DNA from: Okamejei kenojei
Taxonomy: Eukaryota
DNA: 64,000 bases
Assembly: GCA_035221665.1 (NCBI GenBank)
Contig: CM069145.1
Location: 56,978,001 to 57,042,000 of the forward strand
Reading direction: 5' to 3'
Under the pieces are notes generated by a model that had not been told where the DNA came from, did not search any database, and worked only from the letters and a program-made list of their open reading frames with translations. This document shows positions 3,998 to 64,000 of the stretch, one piece after another. The first letter of the stretch is position 1. Every line of letters begins with the position of its first letter. Both the position numbers and the translations under genes were made by a program.

Positions 3998-4287
3998 TAT
4001 ATGGAATAAATTGCCTGAGGTAATTGTTGAGGCAGGTACAATAATAGCATTTGGAAGGCATTTGCACAGGTACATGGATTGGATAGCTTTTGATGGAACT
4101 GGGTCAAATACGGGCACATGGCAGTTGTGTACATGGGGCATCGTTGTCAGCAGTGACAAGTTAGGGCGAATGGCTTGTTTCCATATTGTGTGACCCTATG
4201 TCTTGAATGATTCCTGATATGAGCTGTGGCCCATCGGCAATGATGGGCAAAAAGGAGTTCAGATGAATGATATTCTGAAAAGTATAG

Positions 4288-17360: not shown

Positions 17361-18080
17361 GAATCTACGTCGTTCGTGAGAAGGTATTTGTAGTAACGTT
17401 TTTCAGATATAAGAAGATATTGGGTGGATTGAGACGAATCCCTTGGAGAGAAACAGACTAAATGTGACCTTTGGAGGAGAAAAACAATTGTGGATAAAAG
17501 CTGGGTAATTTCTCCTGGATAAGAGAGTCTACCACTGGAAACCATAAGTCTAAGATGAGTGTGAAAGTATTAAAGGGGACCTGCGAGGCAAGTTTTGTTT
17601 ACATAGAGTGTGATGGGTACAAGGAGCGAACTATCAGATGGTGTAGTAGAGATGGGCCTAATTCCAACGAGTCCTCTGAACTAACAATCTCAGCAGCACC
17701 TGGTGTCAAATACTTATTTTGGAGCTTTTAATTCTGTTTGATTATTAGAAGGTCGGTGCCTTTGGGGTCAACTCGGCACAGCAGTATATGTAGCCTTGAT
17801 ATTCTTAGCTTCCATTCTACGTTTCTGAACCTGCGATTTAAATTGGTATTCTAGTCATGACTTACAGATTATAAGCATCAATATACTTTGCACCAGGGTA
17901 GAAAGCTGAAGTGATATATTAGTTCGTTTAATTACCTAATTTAACATCAGTGATCATGTCCTTACAATGCCAGGGTGCCCCGGTGCCTCTCGGGAACACT
18001 CCAGTGTGTATTTCAAGAGGATCCTGGCATTTTACACGGTGTCAGAAGATTTGCTGCAGCTTCGGAGGTTCCGACTGAAA

Positions 18081-21585: not shown

Positions 21586-22110
21586 CTGGGAAGAAGTTCA
21601 GTATTTCAACCAACCTCAATGTCCACCAGAACAGTTGAGATTCACCTGCTCTGTTTGTGAGTGGGGATACATTCTGTCTTCCCACCTGCTGAGGCATCAG
21701 CTTGTTCTCACGGATCAGAGATCGTTTAACTGCTTTGACTTTGAGAAGTGTTTCAAGCGATTTACAGAGGCACCTACGTACTCACACTTGGAAAGGCCGT
21801 TCGCCAGCTCTGTATGTGGAAAGCAATTTGCCCTGTCGTCCTACCTACCTTCCGTCCTAACGACTCACTATGAACTCACTCACACTGGAGAGAGTCGATT
21901 GACTTGTACAATGTGTGGGAAGGGATTCGCACAATCATCCACGCTGCTGAGGCACCAACTTACCCACACTGGAGAGTGGCCGTTTACCTGCTCAGAGTGT
22001 GGAAAGGGATTCACTTGCACTTCCCATCTCGCCGAGGACGAACACGTTCATACTGGCGAGAGATGGTTTCCTCTTTGCGCGGGAAAGGATTCAATAAATC
22101 ACCCAGACAA
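21586..22110 (+). pseudogene. Tandem C2H2 (Kruppel-type) zinc-finger array, degenerate
   Basis: CTMCGKGFAQSSTLLRHQLTHTGEWPFTCSECGKGF..HVHTGER; flanking fingers have lost Cys/His residues or are frameshifted. Confidence 0.85.
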
Positions 22111-40787: not shown

Positions 40788-41075
40788 CCATATAACATAT
40801 AATCATATAACAATTACAGCACGGAAACAGGCCCTCTCGGCCCTTCCAGTCCGTGCCGACCATTTGTTTTCCCCTAGTCCCATCTACCTGCACTCAGACC
40901 ATACCCCTCCATTCCCTTCACGTCCATATACCTATCCACTTTAGTCTTAAATGTTCAAATCGATCCTGCCTCCACCACCTCTGCTGGAAGCTCATTCCAC
41001 ACAGCCACCACCCTCTGACTAAAGAAGTTCCCCCTCACGTTACCCCGAAACTTCTGTCCCTTAATTCTCATGTCA
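40788..41075 (-). mobile_element. CR1 family B 3' end
   Basis: Reverse complement of the 59640-59927 sequence. Confidence 0.9.
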
Positions 41076-41899
41076 ATGTATTCACCGAGCTTACAGGTTT
41101 GTACCACAACATTTTAGAGCCAATTCTCAGCCTCATAAAATGGTGCTGAAAGTATGCATTTATTATACAATTATTAATCACACCGAACCTTTAGGAGATT
41201 TTGCCTTTCTTATCAATATCTTGCACATTTGTTGTTTTCTGCTCCACTTCAGACTTGCATGGTTCAGTAATGTTAGGTTGATTTTAGTTGTGATATGAAA
41301 CTGCTTGATACGGGGTGGGGTTGCCCCAGATTTACATAATCATAGTGTTGTGCCTGCAGGAACTAAGAATATAAAATAACTATTCTGAAAAAAGTACAAA
41401 TAGCATAGATGCAACAATTCAAATGCTATGTGATGGGTTGATAAATGGACTACAAGAGTTGTTAACAACTAATTTAATATGAATCATTAAAAACATTAAC
41501 GGTGTAATATGCTGTACCTAATAGATAATCTTATTTTAGCTTCTCGCAAAATAGCGCCCAGCTGTATGAATGGCGATTGTTGACCCATAACTGAACACAA
41601 GCCCAAATCTGCCACCTGGCCGTCTTGCCTCATCGCGATCTGGGGCGTGATAGTTAAAACACAAAAGTCGCTACTTCAAAGGTTGCGCTGCACATTTTGC
41701 TTGGACTGCTTATTTTCCAATAGGTTTTACTGTTATTGGAATGATCAGACGTCTTATGAGACGGGCACAAGAACTGTAGACACTAAATTAATCTTCAAAA
41801 TTGTTCTATGCTCCGCTGTATACCAAGAAAAATAGTTGCAGAATTGGCATTATTTAATAAATTAATAAATTAATAAATTATTGAATTCAATAAAGAAAT

Positions 41900-43785
41900 A
41901 ACATTGTGTGAGGATTGTGTGCAGTTTTTGTCTCATCATTTGAGAAAGGGCATTCTTATTATTGAGGGAGTGCAGCGTAGGTTTACAAGGTTAATTCCCG
42001 GGATGACGGGACTGTCATATGCTGAGAATGGAGCAGCTGGGCTTGTACACTCTAGAGTTTAGAAGGATGGGAGGGGATCTCTCATTGAAACATATAACAT
42101 TGTTAAGGATTTGGACACGCTAGAGGCAGGAAACATGTTCTCGATGTTGGGGGAGTCCAGAACCAGGGGCCACGGTTTAAGAGTAAGGAGTAAGCCATTT
42201 AGAACGGAGCCGATGAAATTCCGTGTTGAGTCTGTGGAATTCAAGTGTTGAGTCTGTGGAATTATCTGCCTCAGAGGGCGATGGACGCAGGTTCACTGGA
42301 TGCTTTCAAGAGAGAGCTAGATAGGGCTCTACAAAATAGAGGAGTCAGGGGATATGGGGAGAAGGCAGGAACGGGATACTGATTGGGGATGATCAGCCAT
42401 GATCACATTGAATGGCGGTGCTGGGTCGAACGGTCGAATGGCACCTATTGTCTATTGTCTTGTCTATTAACAGGTAAAGGAGAGTCAGTAGATGTCGTAT
42501 AGCAAGAATTTCAGAAAGCCTTTGATACGGTGCCACGCGGGAGGCTGCTGAGGAAGATGAGAGCCCATGGTATTAAAGGGCATATACTAGCATAGATATC
42601 AGGTTGGGTTGGTGGCAGAACGCAAAGGGGGCCAATAAATGGTGATTTTTCTGATTCGCTGCCAGTGACTAGCGGGGTTCCGCAGGACTCGATGTTGGTG
42701 CCGCTGCTCTTCACGTTAATTATCAATGACTTGACTGAGGGGATTGAAGGACTTTAGGCCATTTTTGCGGATAATTCGAAAATAGATGGAGGGGCATGTA
42801 GTGTACACAAAGCAGGGACTCTGCAGAAGGACTTGATAGTTTGGGAGAGTATGCAAAGAAGTGGCAGATGGAATATAATGTAGCAAATTGTAGAGTCCTG
42901 CATTTTGGTAGTCGGAATAAAGGCGTAGGTTGTTTTCTAAATGTGGAGAGAATCCAGAAATCGGAGGTGCAAAGCGACTTAGCAGTGACGGTGCAGGTTT
43001 CCAAAATGTTAATCTGCAAATCGAATTAATAGCAAAGAAAGCAAACCAAATGCTAGCATTTAGTTCGAGAGGGCTGATATACAAAAGCAGGCGTGTAATG
43101 CTGAGGTTCTATAAGGCGCTGGTCAGGCCACATTTGGAATAATGTGATCCATTTTGGGCACCGTATCTGAGGTTGTGCTGGCTCTGGAGAAGGTCCAGAG
43201 GATGTTTACAAAAATACTCCAGAATTGATCTCATCAATGCCTTGTACAATTTTAACATTACTTTCCTACTCCTATATTCAATGCTCTGATTTATAAAGGC
43301 CAGCACACCAAAAGCTTTCATTACCATCCTATCTACATGCGATTCCACCTTCAGGGAACTATGCAAAGTTATTCCTAGATCCCTCTGTCCCACAGCATTA
43401 CTCAATTCCCTACCATTTACCATGTACGTCCTATTTTGATTTGTCCTGCCAAGATGTAGCACCTCACACTTATCAGCATTAAACTCCATCTACCATCTTT
43501 CAGCCCACTCTTCCAAATGGCCCAAATCTCTCTGTAGATAAATCTACTTCATTATCCACAACACCACCTATCTTAGTATCATCTGCATACTTACCTATCC
43601 AATTTTCCACCCCATCATCCAGATCATTGAAGTACATGACCAGATCATTGATGTACCATGTCCCCTGATTCCGCTAGGCCTAAGAGCTCTATCTAACTCT
43701 CTTTTAAATTCATCCAGCGAATTGACCCCCACTGCCTTCTGTGGCAGAGAATTCAACAAATTCACAACTATTTGGGTGAATTTGT
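41900..43785. mobile_element. Cluster of CR1 fragments (+ 41900-42470, + 42470-43210, - 43210-43660, - 43660-43785)
   Basis: CR1 RT peptides on both strands, e.g. ORF 43109-43489 MEFNADKCEVLHLG. Confidence 0.85.
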
Positions 43786-44679
43786 GTAGGTCTGAAGGTT
43801 AGAATAACTTTGGAAATAACTTTGTTTCAGCACTTTATTCTACGTAGGCGGTGAGATCGTGAATTGTGGAGCCTCTTCTGGGTAATGAGTAAGATGAGGA
43901 GCTGAGTATCGTCAATTTCTGAAATGGACCCCCCAATTACTTCCGTGAATGAGCCATTTCCTTGTTTTAGTTCCGTTGTTAGACGAAACTTTAGTCTATA
44001 AGTGGCATCGGGGCGGACCCGGAGCTTTATTTTTTGCAATGGGAAACAACAACATCGATTGGCTGTTTCTCATCAATAGTTATTTGAAATTGCCAGAATG
44101 GCTCTCACTCAAATTTATTTCTGTAGTATGCTATAAATCCAGTATATATTGAATTGGTGACATAAATCATTATCACTATTTGTTGCGTTATGAAACTGCG
44201 TCATATACCTTATTACAGAGATTAGTTAAGAATGCAGATGCGCAGGGGTACTGGGTCATGTTTTAGGTATTACTAAAACATCATTTATTAAAGGCATGCT
44301 GCTTGCAATGGTTTCGGAAAAGATTAAAACAATGATTATAAAATGAATTGTACTGAGGCAGTATACATTCGAGTAATTAAAATTAATTATAATGATGGTT
44401 AATAATTTTGAAGAGCCTTAAGATTGTGTATATAGGCTTCAAGATCCATGGTGTATCTAATTTATAGCTAACGCATGGACTCCTATGTGGCCGGGGATAT
44501 CAACCAAGTCTACTTTTCACGGAAGCCCACTGAAGTTTTAAATAAACAGCATTTCAAACGCATCCCGTCACAAAGTATCCCGCATCCCCCGGGACTGTCT
44601 TCCCATCTGCATTACAGATGGGGTTCAAGGACATACCTGATCTGTCACCTCACCCCTCGGCACCCAACACCCACCGCCC

Positions 44680-44740
44680 AACACATACACGCACGCACGC
44701 ATGCACACACAGACAGAGACACGCACACACACGCACTCAC
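44680..44740. repeat. Imperfect (CA)n/(CACG)n microsatellite
   Basis: ACACATACACGCACGCACGCATGCACACACAGACAGAGACACGCACACACACGCAC. Confidence 0.8.
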
Positions 44741-44974
44741 GGTAACACAAAATGGAGTGGAAACAAATCCTGCTTCATCATGAGAGACCAGCAGTTGAAA
44801 AGAGAAAACCTTTTGTTTAGGAAGGAACTGCACATTTCCCTGGGTTGATTTTATTCCCAAACATCCTCCGATTGTCTGGAACCCTTTTTTACACATCATC
44901 GACTAAATCACACTTAACATAACTTGCAATCTTCTTAATTGTAACTATTGTATCTAAATCCAACTCTACCGCTG

Positions 44975-45150
44975 GTCGGGATGTTGGCGCAGCGGAGGAG
45001 TTGCTGCCTTACAGCGCCGGAGCCCCGAGTTCGATCCCGACAACGGGTGTTCTTAAAAGATTTGGAGTTTTCCGAAATAATTGGCTTTTCTGAAATAATT
45101 GAAGGGTGAGTGGGAATGGAAGGGCCTGTCTTCGCGCTGTTTCTCACAGC
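44975..45150 (+). mobile_element. HE1/V-SINE, internally deleted
   Basis: TGGCGCAGCGG (A-box) and GAGTTCGATCC (B-box), then a CR1-like tail. Confidence 0.7.
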
Positions 45151-45436
45151 TCCAAGAGACCAGCTACTGTGCTCCATTCACCTTACAGTCAGAGACTCCC
45201 AGTTCACTATTCCGTTCTGTCGGTAAGCCAGTTTCTAATTTATCCTTCTCTTTTTTCGAATACCGACAGTTTTCTTGATCGATCTGCTATAAAATAATTT
45301 TCCAAATCTTCATCTAAAATCCATGAATGCATCCATCCAGTTGCATTAGTCTGTGTGTGGCGCCTATCAGTAAATGTAATTAAAATAGTCGGACATGAAT
45401 TTTCTTTGACAGAACCAGTTGAGGGCCATTGATATA

Positions 45437-45630
45437 CAGTGCCCTGCATAATGTTTGGGACAAAGACCCATCATTTAATTATTTGCCTCTGTAGTACACA
45501 ATTTGAGATTTATAATAGAAAAAATCACATGTGGTTAAAGTGCACAATGTCTTTAACCACATTTTGGTTTCACGATGTAAAAATTACAGCAGTGTTTATA
45601 CATAGTCCCTCCATTTCAGGGCAACGTAAT
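45437..45630 (-). mobile_element. Tc1 terminal repeat; the element continues at 48505-48740
   Basis: TA|CAGTGCCCTGCATAATGTTTGGGACAAAG terminus. Confidence 0.7.
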
Positions 45631-47868
45631 CAAGTCAGGTCAAGTCAAGTCAATTTTATTTTTGTACCACATTTGAAAACAACTCTGTTGACCAAAGTGC
45701 AACATCCAATGGCACATAGATTTAACAATACATACATACAGACATACATACAGCGCTCCCTCAGAGGACCTCAAGAAACGCTTCTGAGTAGAAATATGTT
45801 TTAAGTCTAGACTTAAAGGACTCGACGGAGGGGGCAGTTCTGATGAGAAGAGGGATGCTGTTCCACAGTCTAGGTGCTGCAACCGCAAGAGCGCGGTCAC
45901 CCCTGAGCTTAAACGTGGACCGCGGGATAGTCAGTAGCCCCAAGTCGGCCGACCTGAGGGACCTGGAGGTAGAATGGTAGGTTAGCAGATTTTTGATATA
46001 GGTGGGGGAAAGCCGTTAAGGGCGTTGTATACATATAGGAGGAGCTTGAAATTGATTATGTAACGTACTGGGAGGCAGTGGAGAGAGGCCAGAATCGGGG
46101 TGATAAGGTCCCCTTTACTGGTACGTGTCAGAAGTCTCGCTACGACGTTTTGCACCAATTGCAGGCGGGACAGGGTTGATTGGCTGATGCCAGTGTATAG
46201 GGAGTTGCAGTAGTCAAGGCGGGGGGAGATAAATGCGTGGATGATCTTTTCAAGGTCGTCGAATTGGAGGAATGGTTTAATTCTAGCTATCGTGCGAAGC
46301 TGGAAGAATCTAGTTTTTACCACAGCATTCACTTGTTTGTCAAACTTCAATGTGGAGACAAATATCACGCCACGGTTTTTGACGTGCGGTTGATAAAGGA
46401 GGTTACATGTTCAAGAAGGAACTGCAGATGCTGGAAAATCGAACGTAGACAAAAGTGCTGAGGAAAATCAGCGGGTGCGGCAGCATCTATGGAGCGAAAG
46501 AAATAGGCAACGTTTCGGGCCGAAAACCTTCTTCAGACCTGAAGAAGGGGTTCGGCCCGAAACGTTGCCTATTTCCTTCGCTTCATAGATGCTGCTGCAC
46601 CCACTGTGTTTCCCCAGCACTTAATGTCTACCTTCGAGTAAGGAGCTTGGACTTCCAAGGCTGAGTGCTGTCGTTGTGATGGAGTCCGAGGGGCTGAGTA
46701 GGATGACCTCAGACTTGCTTTCGTTTAGTTGGAGGACGTTCTGTGCCATCCAACACTTTATATCCTCGAGGCAGAGCATAAGGCTGTGTAGATTTGATCC
46801 GTTCTTGGGTTTCATGGGGAGATAGGGCTGTGTATCGCCTGCATCGGAGTGGAAGGAAATGCCGTGCCTTTGAATGACGGCCTCGGGGGCGCATATACAG
46901 AGAGAAGAGAGTGGGGCCTAGGATGGAGACTTCTGGAACCCCGCAGCGAAGGCCAGCTGGGGAAGAGAAAGAGTTGCCTATGTTTGTAGAGAAATTCCTA
47001 TATTTGAGGTAGGAAACGAAGCAGCTCAGGGCAGTGCCATCAATACCAACCCCGCACCGGAGACGGTCAATTAGGATGGTGTGGTCAACTGTATCAAACG
47101 CTGCGCTGAGGTCGAGAAGGAGCAGGATTGCACAGTCGCCGGAGTCGATGGCAAGAAGCGGGTCGTTATGTGCCTTCAACAAGGCAGACTCTGTGCTGTG
47201 GTGGGCCCTGAAAGCTTATTGTAAAATTTCCAGAATGGTATTTTGGTGTAGGTAAGGCATTAGCTTATTTAGAATTACCTTTTCATGGACTTTTGAAAGG
47301 AATGGCAGTTTGGAGATAGGTCTGTAGTTGGTAGGCAAGTTGGGGTCTAAGTTAGTTTGAAGTTAGGAGCGGCTCGACCATCGCGTGCTTGAAACAGTTT
47401 GGAACAGTGCCTGTGGCCAGAGCAGTGTAGATGATAGCGAGGATGCTGGGACCGGCTATTGTAATGGCATCATTCAGAAGGGCAGTGGTGACAACGTCGA
47501 GGGGGCAGATTGCAGGTTTCATAGTGGAGACCAGCTTTACAAGGGAGGGTAGAGTAACGGGATGAAAACAGTCTAATTTAGAAGAACAGACCAATGAGAC
47601 AGCTAGGTCACGAATGGGAGGGGAAATATTCGTTCTAACGTTCTCAACGTTGCTAGTGAAAAATGTAGTAAATTCCTCGCACTGGTACTAGGGGCAAGAC
47701 ATATGACAGAGTTAATGGTACTAAATGGGACCTTGGAATTATGGGCGTTTTTGGAAACAAGATCGGAAAAGTATTGTGTTCTCGCAGACTTTACTGCTTC
47801 CTGGTATTTGAGAATATAGTTTCTCACAAGTTTGAATGAAATTTGAAGCTTATCAGATTTATATTTGT
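45631..47868 (-). mobile_element. L2 LINE, decayed ORF2 and (TTGAC)n tail
   Basis: LLLLDLSAAFDTVDHTILI, RLDYCNSL..LQLVQN..ARLLT and RALAVAAPRLWNSIP peptides. Confidence 0.92.
46409..46638. mobile_element. Foldback Penelope terminal element inside L2, with hammerhead cores on both strands
   Basis: Near-perfect palindrome centred at about 46537; CTGAAGA-A-GGG..CCC-GAAA-CG-TT at 46539-46566 and its mirror at 46536-46509. Confidence 0.85.
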
Positions 47869-48505
47869 GCTGGCCTTTATGAATCAGAGCATTGAATATA
47901 GGAGCAGGGAAGTAATGTTAAAATTGTAAAAGGCATTGGTGAGACCAATTCTGGAGTAGGGTGTACAATTTTGGTCGCCTAATTATAAGAAGGATGGCAA
48001 CAAAATAGAGAGAGTACAGAGGAGATTTACTAGAATGTTGCCTGGGATCCAGCAACTATGTTACAGAGAAAGGTTGAACAAGTTAGGTCTTTATTCTTTG
48101 GAGCGCAGAAGGTTAAGGGGGGACTTGATTGAGGTATTTAAAATGATGAAAGGGATAGACAGAGTTGACGTGGATAAACTTATCCCATTAAGGGTAGGCA
48201 AGATTCAAACAAGAGGGCATGACATGCGAATTAAGGGACGGAAGTTTAGGGGTAACGTGAGGGGGAACTTCTTTACTCAGAGGGTGGTGGCTGTGTGGAA
48301 TGAGCTTCCAGCAGAAGTGGTGGAGGCAGGATCGATTTTAACATTTAAAAGTGAAGTGGATAGGTATATGGACGGGAAGGGAATGGAGGGGTATGGTCTG
48401 AGTGCAGGTAGATGGGACTAGGGGAAAACAAATGGTCGGCACGGACTGGAAGGGCCGAGAGCGCCTTTTTCCGTGCTGTAATTGTTATATGGTTATATGG
48501 TTATA
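47869..48505 (+). mobile_element. CR1 family B 3' portion
   Basis: ORF 48035-48421; (TTATATGG)n tail. Confidence 0.92.
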
Positions 48506-48740
48506 CTTCCGTTCTGATTTTCTGCACTCTATTCTTAGGGCTTTGCATGCAATGACTACTTGAAGTCTGCAATTCATGGACATCACCAGTTGCTGGGTGT
48601 CTTCTCTGGTGGTGCTCTGCCAGGCCTGCACTGCAGCCACATTTAGCTTATGCGTGCTTTGTGGGCTAGTCCTCTCAGTTTTCTCTTCAGCATATCAAAG
48701 GCATGCTCAATTGGGCTCAGATCGTGTGATTGACTTGGCA
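48506..48740 (-). mobile_element. Tc1 transposase C-terminal fragment
   Basis: PSQSHDLSPIEHAF (SPDLNPIE motif). Confidence 0.75.
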
Positions 48741-48759
48741 ACAACAACAACAATGGCAG

Positions 48760-49830
48760 ATAATTCGAAGAATAATACAGAAGGTGCAGGATGAGTACAT
48801 TCCTAGGAGGAAGAAAGATTCCAAGGGGAGTGAGGAGCGACCGTGACTGACAAGGGACGTCAGGGACAGTATAAAAATAAAAGAGAAGATGCACAACGTA
48901 GCAAAGATGAGCGGGAAGCAAGAGAATTGGGTAATGTTTAACGAGCAACGGAAGATAACTAAAAATATAATACCGGGAGCAAATATGAGGTACGAAGGTA
49001 AGCTAGCCAAGAACATAAAGAATAGTAAATAGTAAAAGCTTCTTTAGGGTGAAGAGGAAACAATTCGTTAAGATCAAAGTTGGACAATTGAAGACCGAAA
49101 AAGGCGAATTTATTATAGGGAACAAGAAAATGGCAAATGGGTTGAACAGGTACTTTGGATCCGTCGGGAGAGAGAAAGGCGGGAGAGAGAAAGCAGGGAA
49201 TTATGGACCAGTTACCCTGGCATCGGTGGTGGGGAAGATGCTGGAGTCAATTATAAAAGATGAAATAGCCGCACATTTAGATAACAGTAACAGGATCGGT
49301 CCGAGTCAGCATGGATTTACAAAGGAGAAATCATGCTTGACTAATCTTCTGGAATTTTTCAGGATGTAACTAGGAAAATGGTCAAGGGAGAGCCAGTGGT
49401 TGTTGTGTATCTGGACTTTCAGAATGCATTTGATAAGGTCCAACATAGGAGAATCGAGCAAAGGAGCAAAGAGGTCCTTCTGCTGTTGTACAGGGTCCTA
49501 GTGAGACCACAACTGGAGTATTGTGTGCAATTTTGGTCCCCTAATTTGAATAACATTCTTGCTATTGAGGGAGTGCTGCATTGGTTTACAATGTTAATTC
49601 CCATGATGGCGGGACTGAGAGAATGGCGGGACTGCGAGATATGCTGAGAGAATGGAGCGGCTGGGCGTGTACACTCTGGTAATTAGAAGGATAAGAGGGG
49701 ATCTTATTGAAACATATAAGATTGTTAAGGGTTTGGACACGCTAGAGGCATGAAACATGTTACCGATGTTAGGGGAGACCAGAACCACGGGCCACCGTTT
49801 AAGATTAATGGTTAAGCCTTTTAGAACGAA
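48760..49830 (+). mobile_element. CR1 fragments with internal deletions
   Basis: SQHGFTKEKSCLTNLLEFF, YLDFQNAFDKV, VRPQLEYCVQFW. Confidence 0.85.
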
Positions 49831-50169
49831 TGTACTTTCGCTTGCATTATTATGCTCTGGTGCAATAGTATAAGTATAACTGATAATTTATTGAATTGCT
49901 GTTTATTGTACTCTTATTGTTGTGTGCTTGGGTTAATGTTCTTTTTAAGCTGCAGCACGTAAACATTTTACTGTTAAGGTGCAAATGACAAATATAACCT
50001 ATTGACTCTTACTCTTGACACATTATTACGTAAAATAAGTTGAATGGAATAGCTTTGCCTTCCACAAGGAATGGAGTGTCACCGTATCACCATGCACGCA
50101 CAGTTCCTATAAATGCAGTCACAGAGTCCAACAACACAGGGACAACCTCGTCAGCCCCACGCGCCCATG

Positions 50170-50635
50170 CCAACTTCTTCATGCGAATGAAAGATAAGCC
50201 AAAGGAATAGTTAGATCTCAACCCGGGTGTTGAGCAGCCAGGTTGTTGTTTCTGCGTCAATGTCTGCCAGGCCCTGAGCTCATTTGGAGGGTAGTAGAGC
50301 GGGCACCCAGCGATGACATGGTTGGCTGTCTTGTTCTGATCCGCATTCGCAGGCTGGGGTCCTCTGGCGGAGTGCTCATCCCCACGTGCTGGCATTAAAA
50401 CGCCCAACTGCAGTACGAAGTCTGTTGAGTTTCACCCATGCACCTCTGGGGATAAGACCTTGGACAGCTTTTATCTGGTGAAGAGATGTAGCTGTGTAAT
50501 GGAGATGAGATTGCCTTCCACTCCTGTGACCACTTGGTGGCTTTCCAGTGTGCTTTTGATGCCAACATTTTGCACATACAAAAATATTCCTCCAACATTC
50601 TGGCATTAGGACCCTATCCGTCCCTGCCTTGCCAA
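50170..50635 (-). mobile_element. Vingi/Ingi-type LINE 3' end (zinc-knuckle region)
   Basis: PRGAWVKLNRLRTAVGRFNAS..WG and TANHVIAGCP peptides. Confidence 0.65.
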
Positions 50636-52147
50636 TTTAAGTGTATATTAGTTGCAATGAAAAGATTCGATTCTGTATTGTCAGTTGCTTAGCGAACATA
50701 TAAAACAGTTGTGCAATGAAATGTGGTCATCCGAACTAGGGTCATGTTGTTGTTACAGCACAAGATTCAAGGAAATTGAGCTAAAAAGTCCTAAGGAAGA
50801 CGTCCATTTACATGACGACTTTGACGAGCTTATTAGGTTGTCCAGATACATTCTATATCATCTCCACAACGTTCACTGTACTGTTATTGTAGTGATGCCG
50901 ATGTGACAACATGTGTGATTCCATTCGTCACTCCTCGAGAATGAAGCAGTCCAGGGCAGCTTGCAGTAAGTATGCATGGAAAACGCAGTCACGGACCTAC
51001 AAATGCCAAGTAACTCGTGCGCTGGAAATTTCCACACAAACGATCACTTCCAAATAAAAGAGTCCAACTGCAGAACAATGACATCTGACGGCACTGCCTT
51101 ACTGCGTTCAGCACCGTAAAATCGTGGAATTTGCGTTGATCACAAAATCAATTGGACTAGTCAGTTAGGCAATGCCATTGTAGGTGAAAACCCGGGTATC
51201 CTGTCGTATTTCCCATTTTCCAATCTAATGGGAATTCCTGGATTCTGGGAAGTTTTTTGTAAAACCGAAAGCCACCCATCAACTAATTTTGACATACCCC
51301 CCTTTTTGGAACTTTAGCTATATCCTCTCTCGTGAAACCTTCTGAATTCACCTGACATATGTTTTTTTTCTCCATTATATATTCCTACACTCTCAGTAGA
51401 AGTTGGCGATGATGTTTTGCTCAGTGTACGCTTGTCGTGCACACATAGTGGTAGGATTATGTAAAGAAGGGTTTTAGTACATGTTCGCCAGTGATGGTAT
51501 GAACTGTGGCCAGGGGATGGACGGTATCGTATTTGTATTGATCAGTCGTAAACATATCTACAAATGTTTCTGCGACTACCGTATAATTAAAGTTTATTGA
51601 AGAGCCAAGGATTAAAAACCTCAATTAAGTCAGTGTTTATCTTTGGTCTAAGATGTCCAAGCTTCTGCCCAATAAATCTCCTTATGGTTTTGAACTTACA
51701 TCACTATGCAGATGGCAAGCCAAGACACCATGACACCAACCCCTCCGCCCACTCAGCCCACCTGTCAACCTGCAGTTTAATTGTACTCAGTGACACATCC
51801 CGTAGTTTTACTTCCTGAAAGATATCGAGAGCCTCCTTCTATATAAAGCAAGGGGTAAACCCGACTTCAAATATTGCGGTCGGCAGTATGCTACAGGTGG
51901 TCAATAAAACAGGCGGGAGCTGAAGATGGAACCCGATCGATATTTGCTTGTAACCCCGCCCTTATTATTTCTTTGCAGGGCCGCTTTCACGTTCAACATT
52001 ACCCAAAGACTGATAATCTTTCAATGCGGCGTCTGCTGAATGCTGACACCGAACTCATTAGAACTCGGCAGATGAATGCGGGAATCCGACTAAGCTGGTA
52101 GCAGGAATAAACATACCTAAAATATACGAAACACACCCAACATATGC

Positions 52148-52440
52148 GGCACGGTGGCTCAGCGGTACAGTTGCTGCCTTACAGCGCCAAAGCCCCGGGT
52201 ACCGGTTTCGATCCTGACAACGGGTGGTTGCCTATACGGGGATTGTACGTTCTGCCTGTGACCTGCGTGGGTTTTCTACTATTTCTTCGGTTTACTCGCA
52301 CACACCAAAGTCGTGCAGTTGTAACAATGCAAAATTGTCCCTAGTGTATGTAGATAGTGTTAATGTGCGGGGATCGCTGGTCGGTGCGGACTCAGTGGGC
52401 CGAAGGGCCTATTTGCGCATTGTATCTCTAAACTAAACTA
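52148..52440 (+). mobile_element. HE1/V-SINE, full length
   Basis: GGCACGGTGGCTCAGCGG A-box, GTTTCGATCC B-box, CR1-like 3' part, CTAAACTAAAC tail. Confidence 0.88.
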
Positions 52441-52452
52441 CGTCTTGCTGAT

Positions 52453-53060
52453 TAAGTAAGTAAGTAAGTAAGTAAGTTTATTGGCCAAGTATTCACATAC
52501 AAGGAATTTGCCTTGGTGCTCCGCCCACAAGTAACAACATGACATACAGTGACAGTTACGAATGACTCAGAAAGCACTAAACATTAATAATAATAAAATA
52601 TTAATGATAAAACACCATTGATCAAGCATGTGAACCAACAAAATACCAGATCAAAGGGAGACTACAGATTTTTGGCTGTTGAGTAGAGCAAGTACTCGTG
52701 GATAAAAACTGTTTTTTTGTCTGGATGTGGCCAGGGTGAGAGTGGTCAGAGATGATCTTGCGCGCTCGCTTCCTGGCCCTTGCAGTGTACAGTTAATCAA
52801 TGGAGGGAAGGTTGCAGCCAATAACCTAATCTGCTGATCGGACGATTCGCTGCAGGCTCCAGGTGTCGTGCTTGGTGGCTGAGCCAAACCAGACCATGAT
52901 GGAGAAGTTGAGGGCAGACTCTACGATGGCCGTGTAGAATTGGACCAACATTGCCTGTGGCAGATTGTGTAGGAAGTACATCCTCTGTTGTGCCTTTTTG
53001 ACTGTGGAGTCGATGGTAGCCCCCCACTTAAGATCCTTAAGGTAGCCCCCCACTTAAGGT
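52453..53060 (-). mobile_element. Rex1/Babar LINE 3' end with (TTAC)n tail
   Basis: DLKW..KKAQQRMYFL..FYTAIVESAL..VWFGS..LQRIVRSA and NSFYP peptides. Confidence 0.9.
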
Positions 53061-53814
53061 CCTACTACTGAGATTTCGAGATTAGACTGTAAAGTTTATG
53101 AATGGCGATTTCCATTCCAACTCTTGGAAACGTATTTATTACACCGAAATAGAAAGGGTGTGGAGGAGAATAGCTTGAACTTGGCCCGGCTATTAATGTC
53201 CAGGGTATAACTCGATAGACGTGAGATCACTGTTTTTACTATACGATGCTTACAAGTATGAAGAGCTGGTATTAGATGTGGAACTGTAGACCAACCCATT
53301 GTATATTCTCGTACACTCAACCACATTGAAATGTGCGGAAAATAAGCATGGCGTGATCACATACCATGATCTCCGAATCCTGATTCTAGGGTCCATTCAC
53401 TACAGGCAGGTTGCCGAATGCCACTCACCGCAAATGTAACTCGAGAATGTCGTAAAGAGTAGGATGTGAGTGAACAGCTTCGGAGACAGATAGGGGATGG
53501 GTAAACAAATTATACATTTTGCACAAAGAGTGAGTGGCATAACGTGGGGGAAACTGTGTAGACTATTTCATAATATGGAAAAGGGTCCCGTAACAGGGAG
53601 ACCTGTTATGTACAAACACAAGTACACAGACCCTGAGAGCACGAGGACATAAAGAGTTGATGCAATCCTTTACGTCCCTCGAACAAGTTCTGCTAATGAA
53701 CATGCTGGCTATTCTGATAATTGGCATCCATTTCTCATTCTTGCCTGATGTTCATAATCATTGAATGCCAGCTTTACCCGCTGCCCGTTTCCTCTCGCAT
53801 CCGGCACGTTGTTA

Positions 53815-56040
53815 CAGAGCTCAGAACTACGACCTTGGGCCCGAATTGTCCATGCTGATCGAGGTCCCCCATCTTACCTAGTTCCGCCTTCCAGTGTTTG
53901 GCCCATATCGCTCCAACGCTTCCTTATCCATGTACCTGCCCAAATGTATTTTAAATGTTGTTATAGTACCAGCCCCAACTACCTTATCTGGCCGCCCGAT
54001 ATATCTATCCGCCGTCATCTGTCGGGAAAAAGTTACTTCTCAGGTTCTTATGAAATCGTTGGCCTCTCACGTTAAATCAACTGGATGTCCTTTTATTGTT
54101 CATTCCCCAACAGTGGGTAAAAGCCACCGTGCGTTCACCGCTTCTGATTTTATACTGCTTCTGATTGTATACACAACTGCAAGATCATAGATACGTAGAT
54201 ACATCGACAGTAGTGCAGGAGTAGGCCATTCGGCCCTTTCCCATCCCTTTCCCAGCAAGCACTTCCATTCAATGTGATCATAACTGATCATCCACAAACA
54301 GTTACTGTCTTCCCCCATGCTCCTTGATTCCGCTAGCCCGAAGAGCTCTATCTAACTCTATGCTATCTAACTCTGAATGCATCTAATGAATCGGCCTCCA
54401 CACTTCTGATGCAGATAATTCCACAAATTCACAACTCTTTGTGTGAAAAAGTATTTCCTCATCTCAGTTCTAAATGGCCTACCCCTTATTCTTAAACTGT
54501 AGCCCCTGACTGTGGACTCCCCCAACATCGGGAACACGTTTCCTGCATCCAACGTGGCCCATCCCTTAACATAAGATCCCATCTCATCCTCCTAAATTCC
54601 GGTGAATACAAACCCAGTCGCTCCATTCTTTCATCACATGACAGTCCCGCCACGCCTGGAATTAACCCCGTGAACCGACGCTGCCGTCCCGCAATAGTAA
54701 GATTGTCCATCATATTAGGAGGGCAAACCTGCACACAAAACTTCAGGTGTGGTCTTACCAGGGCCCTGTACAACTGCAGAATGACCTCGTTACTCCTATA
54801 CTCAAATCCTTGCGTAATGTAGGCCAACATGCCATTAGCTTTCTTCGCTGCCTGTTGTACCTTATAGAAGGATCTTATAGAAACTTACAAAATGCTTAAG
54901 GGGTTGGATGGGCTAGATGCAGGAAGATTGTTCCCGATGTTGGGGAGGTCCAGAAAAAGGGGTCACGGTTTAAGAATGAGGAATTCCTTTAGGACCGAGA
55001 TGAGGAAAACATTTTTCACACAGAAAGTTGTGAGTCTGGAATTTTCTGCCACAGAAGGTAGTTGAGGCCAGTTCATTGGCTATATTTAAGAGGGAGTTTG
55101 ATGTGGCCCTTGTGGCTAAAAGGATCAGGGGGTATGGAGAGAAGGCAGGTACAGGATACTGACTTGGATGATCAGCCATGATCATATTGAATGGCGGTGC
55201 AGCCTCGAAGTGCAGAATGGCCTACTCCTGCACCTATTTTATATGTTTCTATGTTTCTATGTTTCTACCTGCATGCTTACTTTCAGTGGCTAATGTACAA
55301 GGACACCCAGGTCTCGTTGTACTTCCCCTTTTCCTAACCTGACACCATTCAGATAATCTTCAAAGAGCCCGAAGAAGGGTCTCGACCCGGAATGTCACCC
55401 ATTCCTTCTCTCCAGAGATGCTGCCTGAACCACTGAGTTACTCCAGCATTTTGTGTCCACCATTCGGATAATAATCTGCCTTCCCGTTCTTGCCAACAAA
55501 GTGGATAACCTCATATTTATCCACATTGTACGGCATCTGCCATGCACCCCTCAGCCTCCTGTGCTCCAAGGAATGAACTCTGAGCCGGCTCAACCTCTTC
55601 CTATCGCTCAGTTCCCCGAGTTCTAGCAGCATCCTCTGAAATCGTCTCTGCACATTTTCCAACTTAGTGACGCCCTTCCTATCCCAGTATGACAAAAACG
55701 GAACGCACTATTCCGAATGCTGCCTGCTCAACTTGGTGTACAATTGCAACATAACACCCCTACCTCTGTACTCGATGCTCTGATTGATGAAGACCAATGT
55801 ATGTAAAGCCTTCATCACCACACTATCTACAAATGGCGAACTTTCAGGTAACTATGTACCTGCACTCCTTGATCCCTCTGCTCTGCAACACCCTCCAGGG
55901 GCCTGTTATTCAATGTGTAGTTTCTGCTCTGGTTAGACTTTCCAAAACAAAACACGTGCTATTACCAGCATTAAACTCGGTTAGCCATTCCACAACTCAC
56001 ATGCTCAGCTGATCAAGATCCTGCTGTAATTTTTGACAAC
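53815..56040. mobile_element. Nested CR1 fragments, including a + strand copy (54863-55265) inserted in a - strand copy, and a Penelope terminus (55365-55460)
   Basis: TACCT at 54858-54862 and 55266-55270 flanks the + copy; CR1 peptides on both strands. Confidence 0.8.
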
Positions 56041-58045: not shown

Positions 58046-58394
58046 GGGGGGATAGGAGGTATGATCATGAATCTGAACAGTAATTCAGTTTCAAGATTTC
58101 AAGATTTCAAGGTTTCAAGGTCAGTTTATTATCATGTACCAATTAAGGTACAGTGAAGTTCGAATTACCATACAGCCATACTAAAAAAAAGCAGCAAGAC
58201 ACACAGCTACATAAACGTTAACTTAAGCGATCCTACCGTACACTGGGAAGGTCGTGCTCTGACACTCTTTGCCAAAATGCAACGTCACAATATCAGAACA
58301 AAACTCTATGGACCACTCCACTGTACACATGCCCAGCTGGTCAAAATCTTGGGGCAATCCACGACAACCATTTTCACTTCCAAGCGATATGTTG

Positions 58395-59927
58395 GAAGTG
58401 TAGAAATAGCAGGAGCTATGACAGAAATATTTCAAATGTCATTAGAAACGGGAATAGTGCCGGAGGATTGGCGTACTGCGCATGTTGTTCCATTGTTTAA
58501 AAAGGGTTCAAAGAATAAACCTAGCAATTATAGACGTATTAGTTTGACGTCAGTGGTGGACAAATTAATGGAAAGGATACTTAGAGATAATATATATAAG
58601 CATCTGGATAAACAGGGTCTGATCAGGAACAGTCAACATGGATTTGTGCCTGGAAGGTCATGTTTGACAAACCTTCTTGAATTTTTTGAAGCGGTAACTA
58701 GGGAAATTGATGAGGGTAAAGCAGTGGATGTTGTCTATATGGATTTCAGTAAGGCCTTTGACAAGGTTCCCATGGAAGGTTGGTTAAGAAGGTTCAATCT
58801 TTGGGTGTTAATGGCGGAGTAGCAAGATGGATTCAACAGTGGCTGAATGGGAGATGTCAGAGAGTAATGGTGGATGGCTGTTTGTCAGGTTGGAAGCCGG
58901 TGACCAGTGGGGTGCCTCAGGGATCTGTGTTGGGTCCACTGTTGTTTGTCATGTACATCAATGATCTGGATGATGGGGTGGAAAATTGGATAAGTAAGTA
59001 TGCAGATGATACTAAGATAGGTGGTGTTGTGGATAATGAAATAGATTTTCAAAGTCTACAGAGAGATTTGGGCCATTTGGAAAAGTGGGCTGAAAGATGG
59101 CAGATGGAGTTTAATGGTGATAAGTGTGAAGTGCTACATCTTGGCAGGACAAATCAAAATAGGACGTACATGGTAAATGGTAGGGAATTGAGGAATGCTG
59201 TGGAACAGAGGGATCTAGGAATAACTGTGCATAGTTCCCTGAAGGTGGAATCGCATCTAGATAGGGTGGTAAAGAAAGCCTTCGGTGTGCTGGCCTTTAT
59301 AAATCAGAGCATTGAATATAGGAGTAGGGAAGTAATGTTAAAATTGTACAAGGCATTCGTAAGACCAATTCTGGAGTATGGTGTACAATTTTGGTCGCCT
59401 AGTTATAGGAAGGATGTCAACAAAATAGAGAGAGTACAGAGGAGATTTACTAGAATGTTGCCAGGGTTCCAGCAACTCTGTTACAGAGAAAGGTTGAACA
59501 AGTTAGGTCTTTATTCTTTGGAGCGCAGAAGGTTAAGGGGGTACTTGATTGAGGTCTTTAAAATGATGAAAGGGATAGACAGAGTTGACGTGGATAAGCT
59601 TTTCCCATTGAGGGTAGGGAAGATTCAAATAAGAGGGCATGACATGAGAATTAAGGGACAGAAGTTTAGGGGTAACGTGAGGGGGAACTTCTTTACTCAG
59701 AGGGTGGTGGCTGTGTGGAATGAGCTTCCAGTAGAAGTGGTGGAGGCAGGATCGATTTTAACATTTAAAAGTAAAGTGGATAGGTATATGGACGTGAAGG
59801 GAATGGAGGGGTATGGTCTGAGTGCAGGTAGATGGGACTAGGGGAAAACAAATGGTCGGCACGGACTGGAAGGGCCGAGAGGGCCTGTTTCCGTGCTGTA
59901 ATTGTTATATGGTTATATGGTTATATA
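58395..59927 (+). mobile_element. CR1 family B, RT domain with a single frameshift and 3' tail
   Basis: ORFs 58277-58822 and 58780-59841 (YMDFSKAFDKVP, GVPQGSVLGP, YADD); (TTATATGG)n tail. Confidence 0.95.
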
Positions 59928-60885
59928 TCACCTACTTCAATTTAGTCTCCAAACTCTCGCATAGTGGCCTTGTACATTCTAATTCAATTCGTCGATATGG
60001 ATAACATCAATATGCATGATAAAGGTGAGCATTGGCATGGTAGTATTTAATATACTAGATGTGGCCTGTGCAGAAATCCTTTGCAATTGCTATTTAGCTT
60101 TGCATCTTTTCATTTAGACACTTCACGGAACAGTAAAAAAATGCCATCCTATAATTTCTATCGATGAGCCTTTGCGACAGCATTCTAGGCAAATCATTGG
60201 TTTATGTTGAAGATTGGGAACCTCCGGGTAGCGACTTCTTATATTTTCTCGCAGTAATGTCGTGGACAGTGAGAGCAGCGCTTTCGAATTTCTTTGGAAA
60301 CCATTTTCAATTAATAAGACTGGCACAATTATTCGATTGTACACTTCCTCAGCAGCCATCTTGGTCGACCTTAATTAATTTATCCACCTCTGATATTATT
60401 CCCCAGTCATATACCTATTCATCCATTTGCTTTCTGTGCACCGTAGTGTATCTAAATTCCCCACGCCATCGCTTTATCGACTGTGTGAACTAATTTCCGG
60501 AATTCGGTATTCGAATGAATTTAGCAAAGTCCCCAAAACAAGAAATCATCAAGGCCCTTCGAAATTGGGCTCTCGAGAGAAGGATTAATCGGGACTCAGA
60601 GCGAAGAGCTCAATTTTAGTGCTACTATTTTTTTGTTCTCTATCAAATCTTATTTAATTTCGCAATGATGTTTAACTCAAACTAAACGACTTGTTATCTG
60701 AATCGGATTCTTAGCCTTGGCTACGTTTGTTATTTCGGTAGGCTAAAAATCACCAGAAGCTTAAACCAAGAGAGTGCACGAACATTTTCTATATCTCTGC
60801 CAACATATTCATGTTAATACACTGCAGATTCCAGCGAATTGATAGCAGAAAAGGGGGACATATTTTTTGCTATCACCCGAAATGT

Positions 60886-60950
60886 ATTTGCAGTCAGTGC
60901 AGTTTCACAACGCCTTAATGCAAATGAGCACTGACTGTGGAGGTTTATAA
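60886..60950 (+). promoter_or_regulatory. IgNAR V promoter: octamer ATGCAAAT (60918-60925) and TATA box (TTTATAA, 60944-60950)
   Basis: Perfect octamer about 20 bp upstream of TATA; TATA about 95 bp upstream of the leader ATG. Confidence 0.8.
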
Positions 60951-61043
60951 GGTCTTCGCTGAGAGCCGCATGGTTACACAGACAGTGGGCGCTAAGGTCC
61001 AGTACCCTCTCTGCTTAACCATTGTTTTATCGTGAAAAAAAAC

Positions 61044-61086
61044 ATGAATATTTTTTGTGTTTCAATACTTTTGGCCTGGTTACAGA
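61044..61086 (+). CDS. IgNAR: IgNAR leader exon (MNIFCVSILLAWLQ)
   Basis: Hydrophobic signal peptide resembling shark IgNAR leaders (MNIFLLSVLLA..); phase-1 donor GTGAGT at 61087. Confidence 0.9.
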
Positions 61087-61221
61087 GTGAGTGCAGTTTG
61101 ATTTTAAAATATTATGAATTGTAATAGTGCAGTACGTCCATCTTGTGCGTCTGTCATTATGTGTTGAATCTTACATTATTTCAAATAAGCAATGTATTAA
61201 ATATGGGGTTTCTCTTTTCAG

Positions 61222-61491
61222 ATGCCTACAGTGTACATGTAGAACAAACACCGAGTTCGGCAACGAAAGAATCCGGCGAAACTCTGACCATCAATTGTGT
61301 TTTACGTGATAGCAGCTACGGGCTGTATGACACAGCATGGTTCCGGCAAACACCGGGTCAATCGGAACGGGATAGCCTAACGATTGGAGGACGATACGTT
61401 GAAACATTCAACTGTCGACAAAACACCTTTTCCCTGCAGATCAGGAAACTGGTCGTTGAAGACACGGCCACGTACACCTGCAGAGGATGGG
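61222..61491 (+). CDS. IgNAR: IgNAR variable (VNAR) germline exon
   Basis: Acceptor TCTCTTTTCAG; (N)AYS-VHVEQTPSSATKESGETLTINCVLRD..WFRQ..GGRYVETFN..FSLQI..EDTATYTC; Cys22, Trp36 and Cys83 with the C'-C'' (CDR2) deletion typical of VNAR; frame open. Confidence 0.95.
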
Positions 61492-61529
61492 CACTGTAGT
61501 TAACCTGCAGCTCATGCAATACAAAAATA
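61492..61529 (+). promoter_or_regulatory. V 3' recombination signal sequence, 22-bp spacer
   Basis: CACTGTA, 22 bp, ACAAAAATA. Confidence 0.88.
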
Positions 61530-61728
61530 CTGTATTTCTCTTTCTCTGAAGAAATAACGAATCGCTTCATTTTAATTGAACATAAAATTACCAAAGTAGC
61601 TACCGAATCCTGTGCCGGACGAGGGCAGATTGGCAATGAGTGGTCAGATGTGGTGACACCCGACGCATGCCGAAGTCGAAAGAGTTGGATGTGCAGTTTC
61701 GTCGTTTAACGAGTAGCGCAGGTGGATC

Positions 61729-61809
61729 TATTATTGTGCTGGGCTTTACCACTGTGAACAGTGCAGAAAACCACAGTGACGAATCTTCAATTCCCGTAAT
61801 ACATAAAGC
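61729..61809 (+). other. IgNAR: D1 segment (61757-61771, AACAGTGCAGAAAAC) with 12-RSS and 22-RSS
   Basis: TATTATTGT-12-CACTGTG | D | CACAGTG-22-ACATAAAGC. Confidence 0.9.
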
Positions 61810-62131
61810 GCCCGAGAAGTTCTTAATGGAAAATGAATACGAAACATTTCTTCAGCAATTGAAATCGTAATTACCAAATACCCACTGCTTTACCAAACAC
61901 TGCTCGACATATCAGAGTTTTATCTCCGTATACTTCGTGATTGTTATATAAATGCTACCGTCGTATTCAAAACAGAACGTTGATATTTACCAAAATATCT
62001 TGAGTGGCTTAGAGTTATAATCATCTACTGGATACTAAGTTGTCAAAACAACGAAACAACCGTTTCCACTGCAACATTCGATAAATAATGTGGAATATCT
62101 GGAGGAGTTTAAGCACAATTTTCAACAGTGG

Positions 62132-62198
62132 AGTTATTGTGCTTATGTGAAATGGTGTGGGGAACAAATACACAGAAGCTCAAGCCATTACAAAAACA
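62132..62198 (+). other. IgNAR: D2 segment (62160-62170, GGGAACAAATA) with 12-RSS on both sides
   Basis: AGTTATTGT-12-TGGTGTG | D | CACAGAA-12-ACAAAAACA. Confidence 0.85.
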
Positions 62199-62512
62199 TA
62201 TTCAGCAGTGTATTGGTGCCCCATCCGTGAATGGAGTCTTTCTGCTCAGAGATATTGTTGGATATGGTGTCAAGTTAAGTTTTCTTCTTTGCTTCCAATG
62301 TACACACATTCCCACTGTTCAATTAGCGGAATTCCGTTTTCCGGACCACACGACATGGCATTGCAACAAATAACGATCAGGGAAAAAGTTAAGATTATAA
62401 GGATGAAAACTGAAGGAAACAACGAATGATTTTACCGACCGCAACCCATCAATTAACGTTTTGTAGTTATATCATTTTGGAGAACCTATTGCAACACCTT
62501 ATCTTTAATGAC

Positions 62513-62551
62513 AATTTTTGTCCTGGGCTTACGAGGAAGTGAATCATTGTG
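62513..62551 (-). promoter_or_regulatory. J 5' recombination signal sequence, 23-bp spacer
   Basis: AATTTTTGT, 23 bp, CATTGTG (read on the + strand). Confidence 0.88.
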
Positions 62552-62592
62552 TGACCACTACGGAGCAGGCACAAAGCTGACTGTGAAACCTG
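62552..62592 (+). CDS. IgNAR: IgNAR J segment (DHYGAGTKLTVKP)
   Basis: GxGT.LTV motif preceded by Tyr rather than Trp/Phe; phase-1 donor GTAAGT at 62593. Confidence 0.92.
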
Positions 62593-63559
62593 GTAAGTTA
62601 CCTTTTTTTGTGATATTTAATACTTTCACTTTGGTATTCCTTTGGTTTATTTTCGCTCAAGCGATAAGAACCATTTAGATTATCGATGAATTGGTGTGAA
62701 TTGTGAATTATAGTGTATTTTTGGAATATTGGCTTGATTCTCTGTCAGTTTAGTTCGCTTAAATATCAATATTACATTGCATTCCTCAGCTGGACCAAAG
62801 GCTAACTCAACAAAAATGTAATTTTGCAAAACGAAATCTACAAATGTTCCTCGTACAGCACTTGTCGTCCCAACCCCCGATAACGTACCCGATAACAGCT
62901 GTTGCAGTATTATTATCAAAATAGGTATTAATATGTTGACATATAGGAGTTTGAATTAACTAACAGGCGCGACCAATATAGATTTATATGCAGGAAACAT
63001 GGCCTCTCAAAGGAGGATTTTGTGTTTGTTATGGTGCGGGTAACATAAAACCTTGAATGGGCATTGAGCGCCAGTGAAGAATTAAGTCAATAGAAATGTA
63101 AACAGCATTTCGTCAACTTCTAGTCAGAGGAATTGCCAAGCAGACCTTCGTTGGGAAAAATGTGTTTACTTTCTGCAATGGGGAAAATAATCTGCTCTTC
63201 AGAAATTAAAAACATGACATAATTTCAATCAGCGCGTTTTAGCTCAGAATAAAGTAGCTGATAATATTCTTTGAAGTTTTCAGTCGCTAATACTAGTGAT
63301 CATGCGGGTGATATTTCAACGTTGATGATCGGAGTGTTCGAGGTTTTTCGTGCTGTGTGAAATAAGTTCTACATACAAACCAAGAAGATGCACTGAATCT
63401 AATAACATGCTCAATGCAGCATTCACAAAACAGGACATAGAAATATCCTGGGTCTATCCCCTCCCACCAAATGTTGATCGGTCAATTCGCAACGTATTAC
63501 AATCGATCATAAGATAAGCTGCATTGCAGTTGACTGGATGACATGTCATTGTTTCTGTG

Positions 63560-64000
63560 TAGCTCACGGCATCGAATACAAGAAAGCACATCCTATGTGT
63601 AGCAATGTAAAATTTTGAGATTTTAAAAATCAAGTCTGCAATTTATCCCATCAGATAAAGCATAAAACGAAGTTTAATTTGGCACCTATTTCACTTTCAT
63701 ATCTTCAGTATCAAGACAGTTATGGCCATATTTATAATCGGAAATTAGCATCTTGTTCCCCATTGCCTTTCCATTGAATTAACACAAAAGCTGTGATCGA
63801 GGACAGTCAAAAGCCCATAACTTTCTTAAAAATTAAGAGAACTCAATTATTATAGATTGAAGCATTCTGAAACAAATATGAAACAATCTTACTTGGATGA
63901 CCTGAAATTAAAGCATATAATTAGTTAGTTCTCTTATTGTAGCTAATTACAAATTCAATTACTAGATCCAAACATCTATCCATTTCTTAAGAAATGATAA
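63560..64000. mobile_element. Probable AT-rich non-autonomous DNA transposon in the J-C intron
   Basis: Inverted motifs AGTTATGG and CCATAACT; no coding signal; runs off the window. Confidence 0.3.

Follow-up and report, generated by a model that had tools for sequence, protein, structure and literature searches.

IgNAR (immunoglobulin new antigen receptor) clusters are canonically arranged as V-D1-D2-D3-J and assembled through four joins (PMC4622739; PMC4279169), and are generally described as having 'up to three' D segments (PMC5192425). What, then, is a locus in which an IgNAR-like V exon is followed by only two D segments before a single J? Such a locus lies in a 64-kb stretch of contig CM069145.1 of Okamejei kenojei (assembly GCA_035221665.1; 'the window' below means this whole stretch), at positions 60918-62598 on the + strand. 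We conclude, with a probability of about 0.85, that it represents the 5' portion (V-D1-D2-J) of a functional germline skate IgNAR cluster, i.e. one encoding a heavy-chain-only antibody. This conclusion draws together the V-set domain of the V exon, its matches to the variable domains of IgNAR (VNARs), the identity of framework region (FR) 4, the absence of the hallmarks of the NAR-type T-cell receptor (NAR-TCR), a complete set of recombination signal sequences (RSSs), and evidence from sequencing runs of the organism.

The interval 60500-64000 was read directly, and recombination signals were located with an RSS scan. The V-D1-D2-J head is intact and unrearranged, with all of its parts in the same (+) orientation. 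An immunoglobulin (Ig) octamer, ATGCAAAT (60918-60925), lies 119 bp 5' of the leader ATG and is followed by a TATA-like box, TTTATAAG (60944-60951). The leader is split: exon 1 (MNIFCVSILLAWLQ plus 1 nt; 61044-61086) opens with the ATG at 61044 and is followed by a donor GT at 61087, and the 135-nt leader intron (61087-61221; GT..AG) closes with the acceptor AG at 61220-61221. The V exon (61222-61491) is open and comprises the end of the leader (N-AYS) and a NAR-type V domain running from VHVEQTP to TYTCRGW. The J segment (DHYGAGTKLTVKP plus 1 nt; 62552-62592) is single and, over 62513-62594, combines a 23-RSS, the G-x-G-T motif of FR4 and a splice donor (GT, 62593-62594). A promoter and a split leader thus precede a single V, as is usual for an IgNAR cluster. 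No other V-like sequence was found elsewhere in the 64-kb window, including the 60 kb upstream, and no V-like open reading frame (ORF) in the 1.4 kb that follow J (62595-64000); a sole V gene with no V array upstream of it fits an isolated Ig cluster, not the V array of a T-cell receptor (TCR).

Between V and J lie two D segments, each flanked by signals on both sides. The V RSS (61492-61529; 12/16 consensus matches) has the heptamer CACTGTA, a 22-bp spacer and the nonamer ACAAAAATA. D1 is preceded by the nonamer TATTATTGT, a 12-bp spacer and a perfect heptamer, CACTGTG (61729-61756; 13/16), and is followed by a second perfect heptamer, CACAGTG, a 22-bp spacer and the nonamer ACATAAAGC (61772-61809; 14/16); its 15-nt coding sequence, AACAGTGCAGAAAAC (61757-61771), reads NSAEN, TVQK or QCRK in the three frames. 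The 5' RSS of D2 (62132-62159; 11/16), with the nonamer AGTTATTGT, a 12-bp spacer and the heptamer TGGTGTG, is the weakest of the six signals, although CAC is kept on its signal strand. D2 itself (GGGAACAAATA; 62160-62170) has 11 nt of coding sequence (frames GNK, GTN and EQI), and its 3' RSS (62171-62198; 13/16) consists of CACAGAA, a 12-bp spacer and the nonamer ACAAAAACA, which matches at 8/9 positions. The J RSS (62513-62551; 13/16) has the nonamer AATTTTTGT, a 23-bp spacer and the heptamer CATTGTG. The spacer formula is therefore V22-12D22-12D12-23J, and the coding ends are separated by 265, 388 and 381 bp. An earlier, preliminary description of this DNA had listed the promoter, leader, open VNAR exon, two RSS-flanked Ds and J with donor, and had given the same formula with spacings of about 265, 390 and 380 bp; every element was found in its place. 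The D1 5' RSS (61730-61746) and the J RSS (62514-62530) are also 88% alike over 17 nt, with the nonamer and first nine spacer bases in common, so that the 23-bp spacer of J resembles the 12-bp spacer of D1 plus about 12 further bases.

To which receptor family do V and J belong? Searches with the V exon alone identify it as a Pfam V-set domain (E 3e-12). Against solved structures, VNARs from sharks or skates take all of the first 30 places (E 1e-44 to 1e-21), with gapless alignment; the best of them is the 8ht3 VNAR (E 1e-44), and conventional antibody domains begin at E 1e-14. The V is 83% identical to this Okamejei kenojei VNAR (PDB 8ht3; P0001) and 51-54% identical to shark VNARs. A protein database search, made in a length range outside which full-length IgNAR and NAR-TCR chains lie, returned eight candidates, all of them VNAR constructs. 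The Okamejei protein ends in ...CRGW-VGGREGYE-GAGTKLTVKP, and the V end CRGW and the whole of FR4 (GAGTKLTVKP) are common to it and the cluster described here. It differs in being a rearranged protein; the locus is a germline cluster, with NCRQN in hypervariable region 4 (HV4) and a J without the Glu codon, and must thus be a different cluster or allele from the one that gave rise to 8ht3. NAR-TCR V genes, which also have a leader, are marked by an a-b loop Cys and by a missing Trp in the WYRK motif (PMC1845163). In the present V, no Cys precedes the canonical one in the a-b region (SSATKESGETLTINC), and the framework Trp is present (TAWFRQ).

Sequencing runs of the same organism show that genes of this kind are spliced and rearranged. 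Five DNA-like runs contain 59-88% of the sequence words of the stretch. A further run, X6, behaves as RNA-seq: its contig depth begins in the bin 60907-61013, in the promoter region, lies on the leader exon, V, the entire V-J interval and J, with little in the leader intron, and is zero past the J donor (none over 62619-63046). Three tiny and extremely deep runs from one study (X7, X8 and X12) behave as VNAR amplicon libraries reaching from leader to constant region. In X7 and X8, contigs join 61086 directly to 61222 at a depth of 16,000-18,000; as the ends of this joint are GT..AG, the predicted leader splice is in use. All three amplicon runs contain V-to-J joints, in which a V end at 61480-61492 is connected to J at 62552-62562 by 19-40 unmatched letters, and six of the seven inserts that could be checked are in frame. 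Joints with 19-40 non-germline letters indicate somatic V(D)J rearrangement; this is demonstrated for the gene family, and its assignment to the present cluster is partial. Finally, past the J donor at 62593 one X6 contig continues for 201 letters that do not resemble the intron; read in the frame of J, the initial 30 give (VKP)GKQPTPPIINL. This sequence reads like the start of a first heavy-chain constant domain (CH1), since CH1 domains of shark IgNAR and IgM typically begin with PSPPI/T-type motifs; framework 1 of a TCR-delta V would be expected to differ. As far as these 30 letters show, the J-spliced sequence suggests a CH1-like start and not a TCR-delta V.

How much of this signal comes from the cluster in the window? 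Contigs 100% identical to it cover 62417-62581, and contigs without the GAG codon at 62561 reach a depth of about 100,000 in X7. Others are 94-96% identical and are colinear with it, with one or two small gaps, over 61464-62159 and 61792-62199. These derive from paralogues or alleles, so the V-D1-D2 spacing recurs in at least one further copy. The paralogues can be told apart by a leader ending in TCG-A (CAG-A here), a V end reading TGT AAA GCA TAT (CKAY), an HV4 with AAACCACAAAAAACC (NKPQKT) and a J with an extra GAG (YEGAGTK), the last two being features of the Okamejei protein too. Expression in the organism extends to at least two other IgNAR V/J types, distinguished by the CKAY end, a leader in ...LS as against ...LQ, the J with the extra Glu codon (YEGAGTKLTVKP) and a CDR1 (complementarity-determining region 1) variant, SYGMGSTYWYRQ. 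These additional V/J types, seen in reads over 61480-61492, 61083-61085 and 62561, imply that there are several clusters, with others than the present one dominating.

These observations bear on the strongest rival explanation, namely that the present copy is little used or an orphan, the repertoire being supplied by paralogues while this copy yields mainly sterile germline or V-less transcripts. Most of the amplicon depth indeed carries paralogue markers (T at 61481, AAACCACAAAAA in HV4, J with GAG), and the reference TGT at 61413 in HV4 is retained in only about 7% of the local depth; an unpaired Cys at that position could be disfavoured. The interval just 5' of J is also deeply covered, and a joint from the leader to 62316 suggests V-less germline transcripts. 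The joint in question, found in X7 and X8, leads from 61082 to about 62316 and is accompanied by a depth of 30,000-55,000 on the unrearranged J flank (62298-62618); its products look like germline transcripts lacking V, and no clear acceptor AG is present where it ends. On the other hand, the reference-type leader splice, at 16,000-18,000, is comparable in depth to the paralogue-type joint (25,000); the contigs crossing 62561 without GAG (about 100,000 in X7) exceed the 40,000-55,000 measured for the J flank in its unrearranged form; some joints depart from V at 61488-61492, and hence with the CRGW end; and no coding part or signal is damaged. An orphan cluster is thus improbable, and this exact cluster is likely to be expressed.

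Is there a third D that escaped notice? We scanned both strands of the whole 64 kb for cores of 3-40 nt between two outward-facing signals, each with CAC and at least 11/16 consensus matches. Three D-like structures emerged at this threshold: D1, D2 and a match with 13/13 spacers at 15568, which is weak and due to chance. Lowering the threshold to 10/16 and 9/16 (background 0.3 and 1.55 per kb) or relaxing CAC to CA revealed no third D between V and J, as all additional candidates overlap D1 or D2; the earlier statement that no third heptamer/nonamer pair lies there therefore holds down to 9/16. A single RSS-like site at 62347-62374 was considered as a third D and rejected, having no partner signal. 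A D might have been overlooked if its RSSs had diverged too far to be picked up by counting consensus matches, or if the assembly had collapsed it, and the weak D2 5' heptamer shows that poor signals are tolerated in this cluster, where isolated RSS-like sites such as that at 62347-62374 do occur. Because the scan counted matches instead of applying a trained recombination information content (RIC) model, we keep a small probability for a cryptic D. We nevertheless regard it as very improbable: down to 9/16 matches no paired candidate lies between V and J outside the D1 and D2 sites, the gaps of 265, 388 and 381 bp are even and none is oversized, independent contigs of other runs follow the window colinearly through 61464-62199, interrupted by no more than one or two small gaps, and the chain 22 / 12-22 / 12-12 / 23 already satisfies the 12/23 rule from end to end. 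The locus thus has two RSS-flanked Ds in place of the canonical three; given that reviews speak of 'up to three' and that exceptions with pre-joined Ds are known, this does not bar it from the IgNAR family.

Least probable of all is a NAR-TCR V cassette (L-V-D-J), in which J would be spliced to a leaderless supporting TCR-delta V and the product would be a T-cell receptor chain, for although NAR-TCR and IgNAR V domains are related and both have a leader (PMC1845163), the downstream exons lie outside the window and the FR4 sequence GAGTKLTV looks TCR-J-like, both V and FR4 have their counterparts in a skate VNAR, the RNA contig splices J to GKQPTPPIINL and not to a V framework 1, and no V-like ORF occurs in the 1.4 kb past J or elsewhere in the window. 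The preliminary description had likewise judged a NAR-TCR the less likely alternative, in part because an a-b loop Cys is lacking, and the retained Trp and the J-spliced contig now strengthen this view.

Several points nevertheless weigh against the IgNAR assignment or against its attribution to this very copy. The constant exons lie beyond the end of the window (64000), and the 201-letter continuation past the J donor is visible for its first 30 letters. The D2 5' heptamer is weak (4/7), and the RSS score is a match count, not the output of a trained RIC model. Paralogues, recognizable by CKAY at the V end, TCG in the leader and the additional GAG in J, account for most of the rearranged amplicon contigs, and none of the 12 junction inserts displayed, out of a set with 59 more, shows a convincing match to D1 or D2 by eye; the inserts inspected belong mostly to paralogues. 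All X6 contigs that cover 61763 diverge from the window sequence, and the near-identical contigs may therefore be alleles or recent copies. Mapping of the runs, which had been suggested as a way to learn D usage and CDR3 length, thus delivers rearranged V-J joints and CDR3s of 6-13 residues, but no clear D1 or D2 in the displayed inserts.

With the locus read as a skate IgNAR cluster, how would its exon be assembled? We infer the order of joining from the RSS geometry. Under the 12/23 rule, RAG in developing B cells would join V, through its 22-RSS, to the 5' 12-RSS of D1, the 3' 22-RSS of D1 to the 5' 12-RSS of D2, and the 3' 12-RSS of D2 to the 23-RSS of J. The same geometry would allow V to join D2 directly, which would make D1 optional; D2 would be needed for J, as the 23-RSS of J can reach only a 12-RSS. 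CDR3 would then be formed by two or three junctions with at most 26 templated D nucleotides, and the assembled exon would be transcribed from the octamer and TATA-like box, freed of its leader intron and spliced from J to the first constant exon. This is in keeping with the earlier proposal of a batoid single-domain antibody locus with at most three junctions, to which the match of V and J to a skate VNAR and the J-to-C-like splice in the RNA contig lend support.

Such an arrangement would limit the length of CDR3. The templated letters from the Cys codon to the G-A-G codons amount to 46 nt (V 10, D1 15, D2 11, J 10), which sets an untrimmed ceiling of about 15 residues before N additions. The observed CDR3s have 6, 10, 10, 12, 12 and 13 residues in contigs of the organism and 11 in the Okamejei protein P0001, compared with 13-19 in seven shark VNAR constructs. 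This trend agrees with shorter loops in skates, of which fewer Ds may be the cause. Of the earlier expectation, then, the difference in length stands (6-13, n = 7, as against 13-19), whereas its causation by fewer Ds goes beyond what these small and selected samples prove.

The cluster can be placed among known ones by its V, its D segments and its spacer scheme. With canonical shark IgNAR (nurse shark types I and II; bamboo shark IgNAR1, V-D1-D2-D3-J-C1-5) it shares a NAR-type V, a split leader and the cluster layout, as well as Ds that lie between RSSs, a single J and segments that rearrange inside their own cluster (PMC4622739; PMC5192425; PMC8692893); it differs in having two Ds and three possible joins where those have three Ds and four joins, and in its batoid host. 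The preliminary description took V-D1-D2-D3-J as the canonical contrast; however, two-D IgNAR clusters have already been published (PMC4622739; PMC8692893). In nurse shark type III, D1 and D2 are fused in the germline and only three joins take place (PMC4622739), and bamboo shark IgNAR2, IgNAR5 and IgNAR6 have pre-joined Ds (PMC8692893); 22-bp spacers occur in bamboo shark too. These clusters resemble the present one in having two separate D elements, three rearrangement events and a restricted CDR3 (PMC4622739; PMC8692893). Unlike them, the cluster has no sequence mark of fusion in its 15-nt D1, and the CDR1 Cys with adjacent Trp of type III (PMC4622739) is absent, its CDR1 being DSSYGLYDTA. 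By its Cys residues, the skate V departs from types I, II and III, as it has no non-canonical Cys in CDR1, FR2 or FR4, and is like a type IV VNAR except for one germline Cys in HV4.

Two Ds are also the rule in the VH-D1-D2-JH clusters of shark and skate IgM and IgW (PMC2193153; PMC1845163). There, unlike here, the VH pairs with a light chain; the V described above is a NAR-type single domain. In its working the cluster would be like one of these, and the resemblance extends to the spacers. Horned shark IgM has V 23, D1 12/22, D2 12/12 and J 23, which is the scheme of this cluster: two Ds with 12/22 and 12/12 RSSs stand between a 23-type V and J.

How might the two-D layout have arisen? If canonical shark IgNAR Ds have 12/23, 12/23 and 12/12 signals, then fusion of D1 with D2, loss of D2, or the failure ever to gain a third D would all leave 12-D-22 and 12-D-12. 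When the three inter-segment intervals are aligned locally with one another, their similarity does not exceed that of shuffled controls, short repeat families show only the sharing of nonamer and spacer start between the D1 5' RSS and the J RSS, and D1 bears no diagnostic mark of fusion in its sequence. On sequence grounds, an ancestral layout, D loss and germline fusion all appear compatible with this locus.

A broader proposal would hold that the two-D state is general, and possibly ancestral, in batoid IgNAR, an IgW/IgM-type V-D-D-J cluster having gained a NAR V and sharks having acquired the third D later, and that the cluster represents a new VNAR disulfide type with one Cys in HV4 and another in the D1 frame. 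We consider this proposal doubtful. The germline sequence encodes one Cys in HV4 (FNCRQN; 61413-61415) and another in frame 3 of D1 (QCRK; 61762-61764). In the paralogue or allele contigs, HV4 reads NK(P/Q)QK and position 61763 is A (TAC), so that both Cys are absent. The two may be a co-varying pair that defines a new disulfide type, as seen in one cluster only.

Regarding the surroundings of the cluster, the upstream 60 kb are occupied mostly by retroelement and transposon ORFs; at 235-1518, 2970-3569, 21635-22147 and 58277-59841 there are ORFs for RVT_1 reverse transcriptases, a DDE_3 transposase and a C2H2 zinc-finger protein. Two related ORFs, at 19206-19799 and 11987-12382, look like fragments or pseudogenes of G protein-coupled receptors (GPCRs); the former matches the C-terminal half of rhodopsin-family seven-transmembrane (7TM) receptors, at 30.1 bits against a Pfam cut-off of 30.5. 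Downstream, about 1 kb 3' of J, X6 has a depth of 2,000-4,000 with many loose ends over 63582-64000, probably from an expressed repeat in the J-C intron.

In the literature searched, we found no description of the germline organization of IgNAR in skates or rays; sharks have been described. The cluster brings rays and skates into a gene family that was already known; the system itself is not of a new kind, and the known mechanism stays as it was. Its germline V, D and J can serve as references for the analysis of skate repertoires and for the building of VNAR libraries. The locus also provides a point of comparison for how the number of IgNAR D segments changed once a NAR V domain had been combined with an Ig cluster (PMC12227049). 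For the skate itself, the V-D-D-J logic would give a simple genetic reason for VNAR CDR3s that are short and mostly free of Cys.

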